From: Lepidodermella squamata
Taxonomy: Eukaryota; Animalia; Gastrotricha
Assembly: GCA_047495785.1 (NCBI GenBank)
Contig: JBLDXI010000042.1
Span: 2,046,001-2,110,000 of the forward strand
Direction: 5' to 3'
DNA length: 64,000 nucleotides
Shown: in pieces, positions 8,462 through 15,300 of the stretch
Numbering within the stretch: the first letter of the stretch is position 1
How the letters are laid out: each line of letters opens with the position of its first letter
Program-made: the position numbers and the translations under genes
Notes under the pieces: generated by a model
Database searches by the model: none
The model's input: only the letters and a program-made list of their open reading frames with translations
What the model was told of the DNA's origin: nothing

Positions 8462-9968
8462 ATATAATGATAGGCGACATAATAATATTGCTGGCACGAG
8501 CCCTGGCTAACAATAGAAAATAGTGTTTAGTATAATATAGAGTGTCCAGAATTGGGGCAAGGAACATAGCGATCTTCTAATAGATATCCAGTCATAATTC
8601 TGGATTAAGAAACTATGACCTCAACGTAGCCCTAAACCTGCGTGACTGGGGCCAGTTGATTCAACCTCTTTTTATTGAAACATTTATAAAACCCTATTGG
8701 AAATGTGCATCGGTTGCGTAGTCTATATGATACTGTCCGTCCGTAGATCTTTCCATCTGAACAATGTCTCTTTTATGCGGAATAAAATAATATCTTCTAC
8801 CGTCGGAAACTATCGGAATAAAAAAATATATCTTTTCATGCGAAATTACTTATTTTCCACTCTACTCTTCCACTACTTTTCCACTCTTCAAAATATCTTT
8901 TTCCTCGAATAATGTCTTTCCGATGACGGAACAATCAACAATGAACGATAGCCCATCACTGCCAAATCGTCAGCTTTGATAACTCTAAGCTTCAGGTCAA
9001 TCCAATAGGACCAATCGGACCAATAGGAATAGTATGACCTATGCCGCAGTTTTTCCCCGCCCGTGCTTCGCATGCTTGGCTGTAACACACAACTACCTCT
9101 TCGAAAGGACCTGCCTTCTTCGCCGAACGGTTGCTCAACAGGCCCAGTTGCCTCTGCCTGTTCGATGTCTTATACTCGAAAGCTCCTACCAGTCTTCAGC
9201 GAAGACCGGAATAGGGGCTTGGGACATCGTTCCAACCGCTGGAGGAACAGAATGAGGCCGCGGATCGATGACGATAAATCTTAGCTCGTGGGCCAACCCA
9301 TAGAGCTAGTTATGAGGCCCTACCCCTGACTGGGCCTCTGTACATATTATATGTGCGAATAGTCGAAAAACTGTACATGAAATTATACGAACATCCACTC
9401 CGATATTTGCACCACTTGTTAAGCTGATGAGCTTTCAGCAATAAATATCGTTCGTGTTGCGACGTAAGGAACCCACAGCACACAGAATCCTAATATATAT
9501 GTAGTAATATTACCCATTGCATCTTTATTACCCAGCCTCCGCAAATGTTCATCCGGTAAAGTGATTCCTGATTACCATCTCACAGCGGTTTTTGGGTTTT
9601 ATTATCTATTTTTCGTTTTATAGCCATGGAATTTCTTGCTTCAAAACCTTAAACTTTCGTTGTTTGAATTAAGGAAATTCGCATTAATATCTCCATTAAA
9701 TAAATTTATGGTAAAAAAAATTGCTCCACGTCATTCAATTATTCAGTGATCATTTTTTAGCGTAAAAATCACATATTTTTTGTATTGGAGTTGATCGATT
9801 TTATATAAAATTGCAAGGTTATTTTTTCGTTCTCTTTGTTGCTTGAGTTCGCAGCTCGACTGAATATCTAACTGTTCATATTATGTAGAAAGAATCTGAA
9901 TTTACATAAATAATAATTATAATTAAGAAAAACTTCAACCTTTAGAAATTAAGGTTCTAAATATTGCA

Positions 9969-10259
9969 ATGGAAGCGCATCTCGCAATTGCTAGAAAAGG
10001 GGGCATGGTGAAAACAATAGAGGAGATTGTTAACTTCATGCGTGCGGGAACGGAACTGGATGGGTCGTGCACTATTAATGACCGGATCTGCTTTTTACTC
10101 TACGGATTTTTCTTGGGTACAGCTTTTATGATCGCTATTCGCCTTTATCGCGCCTTAGTTACGGGACGGCTCAATGTCTGGACTGAGGATGAGCGACTCT
10201 GGGGTTTGGAGCCACATATCCTTGAGAAAATCGCCAGACTTATTGATTTATTAATGTGA
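9969..10259 (+). CDS. Transposon cargo ORF1: 96-aa single-TM protein, unknown function
   Basis: Clean ATG-TGA ORF flanked by AT-rich DNA; hydrophobic segment ICFLLYGFFLGTAFMIAI followed by basic residues. Confidence 0.55.
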   Translation: MEAHLAIARKGGMVKTIEEIVNFMRAGTELDGSCTINDRICFLLYGFFLGTAFMIAIRLYRALVTGRLNVWTEDERLWGLEPHILEKIARLIDLLM

Positions 10260-10385
10260 GGATGCAAACTGAAACAGCGACTGATAATTGATCTTCGACA
10301 AAATTCAAATGTGTAACAAATCATTGGATTAATTTCTTGTAGACAATATATTGAAACATTGCAATTATTTTATAGAAATATTAAA

Positions 10386-10748
10386 ATGGCAGAGGCCTTC
10401 GCCAAACTGTTTCCCAAGCTAAAAGTATTTTACTCTACCACTCAACCAATACTTTCCGATAATGATGCGACGGTACGGCGGATTTTCAGCAATGCTACCA
10501 GCAACACGACTCGTGGCGTCTACTTTAGCTCGACGCACCCTGCCCCAAATGCCAGCGGTGAAGTGTTTACAGCCGCGATTTCAACCGTGTTGAAACCATC
10601 CACATCCTATGACTTAACCACGGTTGCAATCGCCTGCATCGTGTTGTCAGCCGTATTAGCTATTATGTCAATTGCATCGATTCTATACTTTTTTGTTTTC
10701 AAGAAGAGACTCTACCGCCAGTCGCGTCGATGTTGGACGCCCTGGTGA
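10386..10748 (+). CDS. Transposon cargo ORF2: ~120-aa single-TM glycoprotein-like protein
   Basis: Ser/Thr-rich N-terminus with sequons NAT, NTT and NAS; TM VAIACIVLSAVLAIMSIASILYFFVF; polybasic KKRLYRQSRR. Confidence 0.65.
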   Translation: MAEAFAKLFPKLKVFYSTTQPILSDNDATVRRIFSNATSNTTRGVYFSSTHPAPNASGEVFTAAISTVLKPSTSYDLTTVAIACIVLSAVLAIMSIASILYFFVFKKRLYRQSRRCWTPW

Positions 10749-12280: not shown

Positions 12281-12536
12281 TTACCAGCGAGTCTTGCACC
12301 GCGAAACGCCAGTAACTGTTGTTCTAATTTTCTAAATTCAGTTGTTTTTGCAGTCTTCATTCTTGTTGACGTCTTAATAGAGAGTCAAATAGTTCAGCCC
12401 CGTGAACATTAAAAAAATATAAATATTCAATTCATTTTCTTTATTTTTACTGATTCATTTTATGACGTGCTGATCTCGCATAAATGCGATTAAAAGTAGT
12501 TTTACAGAATGATGCTTTTTAGTCAATATTATGATT

Positions 12537-14480
12537 TTAGATGATCTTCGATGTAGTGCTGCAAGTCGGTCCATTCTTGTCAGCCTCCTCTTCCAAAGCC
12601 TCGATCATTGATCGATAAGCCTCTGGGATTGTTCCCTTGTTGAGTAATTCAAGAAGATCTTTTTTCAAACTAGCCTCGATTGGTAAGCGCTTGCTGTGTT
12701 TTTTCTCTAGTAGGAACGGAAACAGCGATATGTCTTTGTTGTAGCGTTTTGCCAAATAAAAATGGAAGTGTGAATCAAACGTCTTCTTGGTTTGAAGATA
12801 GTTGGGATAATCTTTTTCATATCGAAACCAGCACGGCTCAGACCACCGGACGTCATTTTTCTGTTCATCTTGCAAGTATTGCGCAAATTTGGGAGATTTG
12901 TCAAAGCTGTAAAAATCGGCGTAAGTCAATTCGATGATTTTGTATGGCCTGACAACATCTCGCTGTTTTGTTTCTGCTCCAAAAACAGCAAGTTTTAAAG
13001 CCGCGTCAATCGGAGATTTTCGTGATGCCAGAATTATTTCTCGCCATTCAGCCGTCCAGCTGATGTTCTTCCGTTTTCGGGCTTCGCGCTCTATCGTAGC
13101 GTGAACGCTGTCACATTCCATTTGGGAATGACCGGGTTCGAAAAACTTGTGATCAACTATCCGAAGGTTTCCCGGACACATGGAAAGAGCAGCGAAAAGA
13201 GCATTCGCAATGTACTGTGATTTGTTCTGACTGCCAGTACTATCACTCCATAAAATAAGATGCTCAACTTCTTTTTGTAGCATTTCGGTAATAAACTTGA
13301 ACAGGCACGTCCCAACTTCGTCAGTTCCGCGACCGCTTTCAGTTTGATCCCAGAGAAAACAGATCGCATCCTTAGATGAAGCGTCATACATGGTCAAATT
13401 TGAAGTGTGCAGTTTTTTCTTGTATTTTATTGAACAGCAAGGGGTTTCAAGAATAGCTTGCATGTCGAATTCGAAACAAGCAATTGATCCATTCGATAGT
13501 TTTGCTGTAGATATATCGTCATTTTTTGATTCTCTGGCAGCATCCCTTGCATTTTCGTGAGCTCTCTTTTCTACAAGCATTTCGTGCGTGAACAGATCTT
13601 CTGGAATCGTTGTAAATCGCTCGCATTTTCTACAGGCGTCCTTTCAAAATGAAAGCTATATTAGATAGAGCAAGGAATTAAAGTTCGTTATTACCTTGCG
13701 TGGTTTATGAAACGCCAGCTTTGGAAACATCTGTTTGAAGATCGAACGGTAAGTTGAAAATTTTACGGCCTTGACTTTATCACGAAAAGCCCAGTTCAGG
13801 TATTCTTGACAATAAAATCGATACAGTTCACGCAAATTCAATGATCCAGCTAGGTATTTTCTGTCCGAGCGCTTTCGATTGTAATGATTATCTATTGCCT
13901 CGTAGCTTTTGATATGATTGTAAACAAACTTGTAGCTATCGTCGCTGATACGATGTGGCGGCTTATTATTTTTACCTCGCAAATCCGGAGCGATGAAAAA
14001 TCCATCTTGCACTTTATGTTCCAGCGTGTAGGTGATAAAAGCTCGAGTTTCATCGAGACAGTTCAAAAAGAAGGATCGACAAACTTCAGTTGAATCACGA
14101 CTTGAAGCTGATCCAGCTGTGGAATACATGCTGGGCAATGAATAAACGAACCGCCGCGGCCCATTTTCTGAATCACGATTCAGAGTGACGTAGCAATTAA
14201 TAAATTGGCGTCTGGCATCGATAGATCCTCGAGACCAATAGCTGTTGAAGCATTCTCGAACTGTGACTTCTGTGAATTTCTCAAAACAATTTCTGGGGCA
14301 GAAACAACGGATGAAGAAAGGCTCTCTGCCTTTGACAGATTGCTGCGGTTTCTGAGTTTGTTGATAAGGTTTTCCCGAGTTTCGATCCATTTTTCGCTGT
14401 ATCGAATTGAACGACGTTCGTTTCCGCGTATCCAGCAGCCTGACAGGTGTTGGCTTCAGCCACTCGATCGATGCAGACAT
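12537..14480 (-). CDS. Sola1-like DDD transposase, ~629 aa; exons 14480-13695 and 13640-12537
   Basis: CFCPRNC, VCRSFF, DLRG, HYNR..YL, PRK|DACRKC (restored by the 54-nt intron), FDMQ, WDQTESGRGTDEV, WSDSTGSQNK, GHSQMECDSVH; no stops or frameshifts. Confidence 0.85.
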
Positions 14481-15300
14481 GACAAAATCGAAACAATTGT
14501 GAACTTTAGTCTGATACAAAAATTCCCAGTTGAGAACAGTCCAAGAGAACGCACTGATACTCATTACCGTGATTACAGTCATTACGTGCAAGAGCGCCGG
14601 ATCTTTATTGCGCTTTTACGATGTTATGATTTTGCATACCTGGAGAACATCCTATCACTAAATCCTCTACACGGCTGTATTATATATATACCTGGATACT
14701 GTGGGTTTCTTACGTCGCAACACGAACGATATGGGCTGGCACTAAACTTTCCCAATTCTTTGCGATATCGGCTTTTACCGATACTTTTCCTTAACATTTT
14801 AGCCGTTGCCTTAGGTTATGCAGAAAAAGCATAATTGTTTCAAGCCTGTTGACATATTATGAATCTGGAAAATCATTGATTTATAAAATCGACACTTTGA
14901 ATTGATATCGGCTAAATTATAACCGAGTTATCCTATCTGAGTTATCTGAGTTATCGTAAGCTGACCGCAAAATACGCGTAAAATATAGATTCGTCGTTTA
15001 GGCATTAAAGAATAAGTCGAAGTTCTGATAGTGAAGACGTCAAAATCCATATTTTTGGAAAATCTAATGCAGGAGTCTCTAACTTAGCTCTGGAACCCCA
15101 AAATTACATGAAAAAGTGACGCAGATATCTAGGCAAAATAAGGGTGTTCTCTTGGAAAAATTTCTGGGAAATACCATTCCACCTAGAGTTTGACTGTAAT
15201 GTTACCTCACTGTTTTGAATAGAACGGGCGTGGCTTGGTATATGGCTAAAAATTGAACTAATTTAAACTTAAAACCAGCTCTATGTGTAGCCTCTACGTA

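Follow-up and report, generated by a model that had tools for sequence, protein, structure and literature searches.

In the usual view, an animal cut-and-paste transposon requires no protein beyond its transposase, or at most a soluble DNA-binding helper as well. A locus of the gastrotrich Lepidodermella squamata raises the question of whether such an element can also maintain a gene for a membrane protein. The DNA analyzed here, referred to throughout as the window, is a 64,000-nucleotide (nt) stretch of contig JBLDXI010000042.1 (positions 2,046,001 to 2,110,000), and its positions 9449-14728 are occupied by a 5,280-bp Sola1 element with an inverted repeat at each end. Between the left end of the element and the 3' end of its transposase gene lie three plus-strand frames, g1, g2 and g3, which together we term the accessory block. 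A first-pass annotation, made from the letters alone, had described the locus as an intact Sola1-like transposon with a three-gene membrane-protein cargo. Our analysis identifies g3 as a real and conserved gene, and we assign a probability of about 0.6 to the explanation that an autonomous Sola1 carries g3 as a transposon-adapted accessory protein rather than as a random capture.

Each end of the element was first compared by direct reading. The left terminal inverted repeat (TIR; 9449-9485, plus strand) and the right TIR (14692-14728, minus strand) are each 37 nt in length; the arms agree over nucleotides 1-20 and 22-30, with a mismatch at nucleotide 21 and three more among the final seven, giving 29/30 matches in the outer segment and 33/37 overall. 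The near-perfect TIRs of the first-pass annotation are thereby borne out. Three copies of the terminal 20-mer are present in the window, where zero are expected (none in 100 shuffles), and a (TA)n patch lies ~45 nt inward of both element ends. Inspection of the flanks reveals the tetranucleotide ATAT on both the left (9445-9448) and the right (14729-14732), a candidate 4-bp target-site duplication (TSD) of the AWWT type, where an AWWT target is the hallmark of Sola1 (PMC3845634). The TSD that had been claimed is a candidate: ATAT flanks both sides of this single copy of the element and is consistent with the Sola1 target, but the evidence for a duplication is weak, both because a palindrome is inseparable from an extension of the TIR and because, given the AWWT preference, two independent ends would match in ~1/4 of cases by chance. 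A search between the transposase stop and g3 found no internal left end, so the locus is most simply read as one unit of 5,280 bp.

A further end of this type, the third occurrence of the 20-mer, is present elsewhere in the window. At positions 38910-38962, flanked by ATTT, a right-type end stands alone and belongs to a related Sola1 family; its TIR core (38933-38957) is 24/25 identical to the element terminus, with 74% identity over 53 nt. This solo end has no internal similarity to the element and no partner end within the window. Two candidate features of the element itself were rejected. A 24-nt inverted match of 75% (9889/12325), considered as the boundary of a nested element, does not exceed what a 9-nt seed would yield by chance within 6 kb. 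Restoration of a host open reading frame (ORF) across the empty site was rejected because the junction is spanned only by a 73-codon minus-strand frame and by nothing gene-like.

The transposase gene occupies the minus strand and is intact, encoding 629 amino acids (aa) in two exons, with a 54-nt GT-AG intron (13694-13641) as the sole interruption of the frame. Exon 1 (14480-13695, with its ATG at 14480) encodes an N-terminal cysteine-rich region that is conserved in relatives, and exon 2 (13640-12540, stop 12537-12539) encodes the catalytic core with the candidate DDD triad D321/D395/D439. A search with exon 2 returned 14 protein relatives at ~30% identity, some carrying Pfam DUF7869, and a pattern scan of metagenome contigs yielded 337 further relatives. 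Alignment of these relatives shows D395 and D439 to be invariant, together with the FD block that contains D321, and the blocks SD(T/S)xGxQN and GHSQMECDSVHxxIE are likewise invariant. The transposase itself gave no Pfam match, scoring below DUF7869, and its family profile gave no match among PDB sequences.

Assignment of the element to a superfamily was made by comparison with published cores. For Repbase Sola1-1_AP, Majorek et al. 2014 (PMC3985635) give the RNase H-like core in their supplement; its five blocks align in the same order to transposase aa 320-435, and the longest is identical at 14 of 24 positions, whereas the Sola2-1_HM core from the same supplement is unlike the transposase of this element. 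Membership of the transposase in Sola1 is supported by this alignment, and we file the element as Sola1 because of the Sola1-1_AP match and because its lengths, size and TIRs fall in the ranges reported for Sola. The intact DDD transposase and the Sola1-type identity proposed at first pass both hold, the latter through the homologous core, the AWWT-type flank and the DDD blocks. Transposase and ends thus describe an autonomous Sola1 cut-and-paste DNA transposon which, as an element, is an ordinary Sola1.

We confirmed g3 as a real gene because its introns restore one frame, its codon score is the best of the six frames, it has homologues and its cysteines are conserved. Four plus-strand exons are separated by three phase-0 introns (51, 52 and 55 nt) with canonical GT-AG borders, and once joined they give a single frame of 420 codons, in agreement with the open four-exon frame noted previously; this frame had the best codon score of the six even though g3 was excluded from training. 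Exon 1 (10860-11099) encodes a predicted signal peptide (aa 1-20) and the start of a cysteine-rich lumenal domain (C59, C71), and exon 2 (11151-11516) encodes the rest of that helical domain (C90, C102, C115, C138) followed by an amphipathic helix (aa 148-180). Exon 3 (11569-11709) contributes the first hydrophobic hairpin, while exon 4 (11765-12277, stop to 12280) contributes the last hydrophobic segment or segments, and a tail of 120 aa rich in P, S, T and A that ends in the basic cluster PRARRARQK, its terminus reading PRARRARQKSTRSGNEY. Four N-glycosylation sequons fall in the N-terminal 150 aa, the lumenal part, and three to four membrane segments are predicted from moderately hydrophobic stretches between about aa 205 and 297.

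The relatives of g3 are few. A phmmer search with exon 2 against 1.84 billion representatives returned three matches only, all short orphans with E values of 3e-5 to 4e-4, and a profile search added three more. The homologues comprise P0015-P0020, L002 and L003, and tblastn of g3 against contig L002 gave an E value of 1e-19 across residues 37-236, which marks them as genuine relatives. The six cysteines and an FDNF...PIC motif are kept in these relatives, and a short-intron structure is common to g3 and the homologue genes. For homologue P0017, the N-terminal domain modelled with AF2 from a 12-row alignment is an all-helical bundle with a core predicted local distance difference test (pLDDT) score of 88-95, and on this model the lumenal domain of g3 is confidently predicted to be a disulfide-stabilised, helical domain of ~150 aa. 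Foldseek of the family's domain model against PDB and BFVD gave no significant match, VIA-align against 48,161 chains gave generic helical matches only (best Z 5.0), and the g3 profile had no match among JGI metagenome contigs or IMG/VR viral contigs. The Pfam NEMP domain, which marks the NEMP/TMEM194 nuclear-envelope proteins, was not matched in g1, g2 or the g3 exons. Where the window g3 has PRARRARQK, three distant relatives have C-terminal tails ending in the AT-hook-like RRRGRP(T/A)K (L004:8091-8456, L005:4705-5097 and L006:1333-1704).

These three distant loci, found in two metagenome assemblies, reveal what accompanies g3 outside the window. At each of L004, L005 and L006 the g3-like gene converges on a minus-strand gene of 352 aa, and the convergent order of the two is the same as in the window, although the 352-aa partner protein is unrelated to the Sola1 transposase. 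Helix-turn-helix (HTH) domains are indicated in the partner by a DUF4817 match above threshold in L005 and by HTH_32 and Tc3-type HTH matches below threshold. The partner also contains the motifs IIWSDEC, FMQDGAPxH and WPSRSPDLTP, and these align to the catalytic motifs of Sleeping Beauty (SB100X) at E 0.16-0.24. We read the partner as a putative Tc1/mariner-like transposase. Pfam DDE_3 found no match in the partner protein, and an AF2 model of it reached a pLDDT of 35 and was unusable.

Each pair of genes was then examined for selection. DNA identity between L004, L005 and L006 is 63-67% and is confined to both genes. Synonymous sites are saturated (synonymous difference, pS, 0.73-0.96), and the corresponding nonsynonymous values (pN) are 0.13-0.28 for the g3-like exons (against a pS of 0.75-0.96) and 0.23-0.30 for the transposase-like gene. 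Because pN is far below a saturated pS, the g3-like passenger has been under purifying selection through deep divergence. In other words, three loci separated by deep divergence have each retained a g3-like gene beside a transposase gene. Neutral evolution of the cargo, or its confinement to this one copy, which the first-pass annotation had held out as the contrary outcome, is not what these loci display as far as they allow a test. A multi-copy family of g3-like loci is suggested, since two of the three share one assembly. Just upstream of the g3-like gene each locus carries a conserved small ORF of 66-79 aa with an N-terminal signal peptide (L004:7038-7247, L005:3613-3852 and L006:277-477), for which pN is 0.28-0.41; tblastx between L004 and L006 detects this ORF at an E value of 3e-22, and neither g1 nor g2 resembles it. 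Directly upstream of the g3-like locus in L005 lies a separate MULE-like element (L005:148-3324) with 38-nt TIRs (95%) and ZSWIM/Ulp1-like ORFs.

The remaining two frames of the accessory block are less certain. The plus-strand ORF g1 (9969-10259) encodes 96 aa with one hydrophobic segment (aa 39-57), and g2 (10386-10748, plus strand) encodes 120 aa with N-glycosylation sequons and one strong transmembrane (TM) segment (aa 82-100). The g2 frame stops at 10746-10748, and the +1 frame is open to 10811 with a well-scoring acidic tail (…GDTAEEDDKEDDEVHNATWAKL), which suggests a one-base frameshift near 10725-10745 or a sequencing error. An in-frame splice between g1 and g2 is possible, from the donor at 10256 to either of two acceptors (10342, 10375). 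Both frames are single-TM orphans, and they are only plausible as genes. The three-gene membrane cargo of the first-pass annotation is therefore retained for g3, with its four exons and homologues, but not for g1 and g2. The accompanying claim, that the block is a maintained accessory module rather than captured scraps, likewise carries over to the spliced and selected g3, while g1 and g2 are candidate coding frames.

What might a transposon gain from such a protein? With its predicted glycosylated lumenal domain, its three to four membrane segments and its tail of DNA-binding type, g3 would best fit a protein of the inner nuclear membrane or the endoplasmic reticulum (ER). We propose that g3 is probably an ER or nuclear-envelope protein whose tail points into the nucleoplasm or cytoplasm. 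The basic tail, AT-hook-like in the relatives that carry RRRGRP, would contact DNA or chromatin, and g3 would in this way help element DNA or the transposase to work at or through the germline nuclear envelope.

Several results weigh against g3 as an adapted accessory protein. Mobility of the whole unit depends on one TIR pair and the weakly informative ATAT flank. The 80 other Sola1-like metagenome loci that we surveyed for TIRs, TSDs and recurrent accessory genes, all on short contigs, contain no g3-like or recurrent accessory gene. A search for TIRs around the L004-L006 loci found none, and the partner gene there is a putative Tc1/mariner-like transposase, an assignment drawn from HTH matches and motifs. 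Pfam searches that covered every ORF and exon within the element, together with the g3 homologues, placed the cargo in no family; for the g3 pieces, searched exon by exon at lowered sensitivity, and for the homologues this holds at E values up to 10. Neither Pfam, PDB nor viral-fold matches point to a function for g3. For g1, a word-index search returned no homologue, and the codon scores of g1 and g2 are not above the background of other ORFs of similar size.

Some of these same observations would be expected if Sola1 had captured host DNA containing two or three small genes, in a manner akin to transduplication, and if those genes were intact merely because the element is young. Such passive passengers would account for the lack of similar genes at the 80 other loci, for an orphan g1, for a g2 that is possibly already frameshifted and for a cargo to which no function can be assigned. 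We nonetheless regard this explanation as unlikely, as it sits poorly with the carriage of a whole four-exon gene with its own signal peptide instead of a fragment, and with three deeply diverged loci that keep the same convergent order beside a transposase-like gene under strong purifying selection. An assembly of unrelated parts is more improbable than any other explanation considered here. In that case host genes would be bracketed by chance between a left end standing alone and an autonomous copy that had lost its own left end, and both the ~1/4 chance of matching ATAT flanks and the related solo end within the window (38933-38957) lend it something. Against this, the two ends belong to the same family, with 20/20 outer bases, 29/30 matches and a (TA)n patch ~45 nt inside each; no left end intervenes between the transposase stop and g3; and the solo end at 38957 is more divergent (24/25 in the core, 74% over 53 nt).

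Two further explanations accept g3 as functional and differ over what it does. The layout of the GEX1/Kar5/Brambleberry family comprises a signal sequence, a cysteine-rich domain with six cysteines, coiled coils and two to three C-terminal TM segments (PMC7586128), and g3 matches this description, so that g3 might be a true shortened member through which the transposon manipulates nuclear-membrane fusion, for example the fusion of zygotic pronuclei. Layout alone is no proof of homology, however, and we consider membership distinctly unlikely. The phmmer search of the cysteine-rich exon against the 1.84 billion representatives brought up no GEX1, Kar5 or Bmb protein, its three matches all being short orphans; no piece of g3 or of any homologue matched a Pfam family, Tht1/Kar5 included, at E values up to 10; the fold comparisons gave no link to the family; and g3, at 420 aa, is shorter. 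The g3 family, moreover, has so far been found only beside transposase genes. The second explanation is that the block is a selfish module, either resembling a killer or toxin-antidote pair or acting at the cell surface, which biases transmission or aids horizontal spread and has no role at the nuclear envelope. Small orphan membrane proteins clustered on a mobile element, with no housekeeping homologue, would suit it, and the drive systems wtf of fission yeast and peel-1/zeel-1 of C. elegans use small membrane proteins of this kind. There is no direct evidence for such a module, no viral relatives were found, and a basic or AT-hook-like tail combined with a glycosylated lumenal domain fits a tether at the nuclear envelope or ER better than a toxin; we judge this explanation very unlikely.

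Returning to g3 as an accessory protein adapted to its transposon, a broader proposal can be made tentatively. Unrelated transposases, Sola1 here and a putative Tc1/mariner-like enzyme elsewhere, may have repeatedly recruited a small membrane module of the nuclear envelope or ER as a portable accessory function, a possibility in which we place limited confidence. The module so recruited might consist of a cysteine-rich lumenal helical domain, membrane segments, a DNA-binding tail of basic or AT-hook type and, as partners, one or two very small proteins that are membrane-bound or secreted, a composition that we offer with the same reserve. If true, the module could, for example, anchor the excised element or its transpososome at the inner nuclear membrane, or could influence how pronuclei or the nuclear envelope behave in the germline, and for cut-and-paste elements it would parallel the capture of env by retroelements. 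A whole membrane-glycoprotein gene, spliced and under selection, that accompanies transposases of two apparently unrelated superfamilies would point to an unrecognised accessory function at cellular membranes, for which the nuclear envelope is the most plausible site. Our literature searches returned no report of a cargo-bearing Sola or of NEMP on a transposon, and within the literature that could be searched the g3 passenger family and its association with transposases appear undescribed. With one verified passenger gene in a compact 5.3 kb, the element is a convenient minimal system for functional testing.

The window contains additional repeats and mobile elements. A repeat of ~1.1-1.5 kb is present as inverted copies at 4373-5871 and 20425-21453, which lie 15-17 kb apart with 81-98% identity and bracket the Sola1 element, and a third, partial copy occurs at 26572-26871; the inverted pair probably represents dispersed repeats of one family and not a set of giant TIRs. 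Direct (87-91%) and inverted (81-89%) repeats of 55-148 nt are shared between 17631-18584 and 24237-24612, ~6 kb apart, and together with a local foldback at 17644-18584 constitute another repeat or transposon family. PIF/Harbinger-type transposase ORFs are identified by Pfam DDE_Tnp_4 at 308-1162 (E 4.5e-32) and 46523-47011 (E 2.1e-11). A tandem satellite with a 69-bp period occupies 2521-3275, in at least eight overlapping 272-nt registers of 97-99% identity. A foldback at 57176-57701, which includes 32-bp tandem units, has 172-nt arms (57241-57412 and 57500-57671) that are 94% complementary and 87 nt apart, and it adjoins a trypsin-like ORF on the minus strand (56405-57010).

Comparison with known systems separates what is ordinary in this element from what is not. 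Sola DNA transposons were reportedly described by Bao et al. in 2009. They range from 2 to 9 kb, with some over 15 kb, and have TIRs of 11-1124 bp (PMC10741241); given such large members, neither the size of the window element nor gene-carrying as such is unheard of. The Sola1 of Megachile rotundata, at 2,778 bp with a 630-aa ORF, offers a direct comparison. The window element resembles Sola1 in its conserved DDD blocks, in a transposase of 629 versus 630 aa, in a 4-bp flank that fits the AWWT type and in a TIR length and overall size that fall within range. In contrast, ~2.9 kb of the element is a block of membrane-protein frames on the opposite strand, where the insect Sola1 described and the 80 metagenome loci show only transposase, and its TIR sequence differs from that of the published GGACCG... 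family.

A second, non-catalytic gene kept under selection is itself familiar from two-gene DNA transposons, among them PIF/Harbinger with its Myb-like ORF2, CACTA/En-Spm and MuDR with mudrB. The window element shares with these the pairing of a cut-and-paste transposase and a selected non-catalytic partner, but their helpers are soluble proteins that assist in DNA binding or nuclear import, whereas g3 is predicted to be a glycosylated multi-pass membrane protein. Mobile DNA that carries genes unrelated to transposition, sometimes including membrane or fusion proteins, is likewise represented by Teratorn, by Mavericks/Polintons with fusogens, by Starships and by Pack-MULE-type capture. The window element differs from these in being small (5.3 kb in length) and non-viral, with no capsid, polymerase or packaging genes, and in that what it carries is a complete, spliced gene rather than gene fragments.

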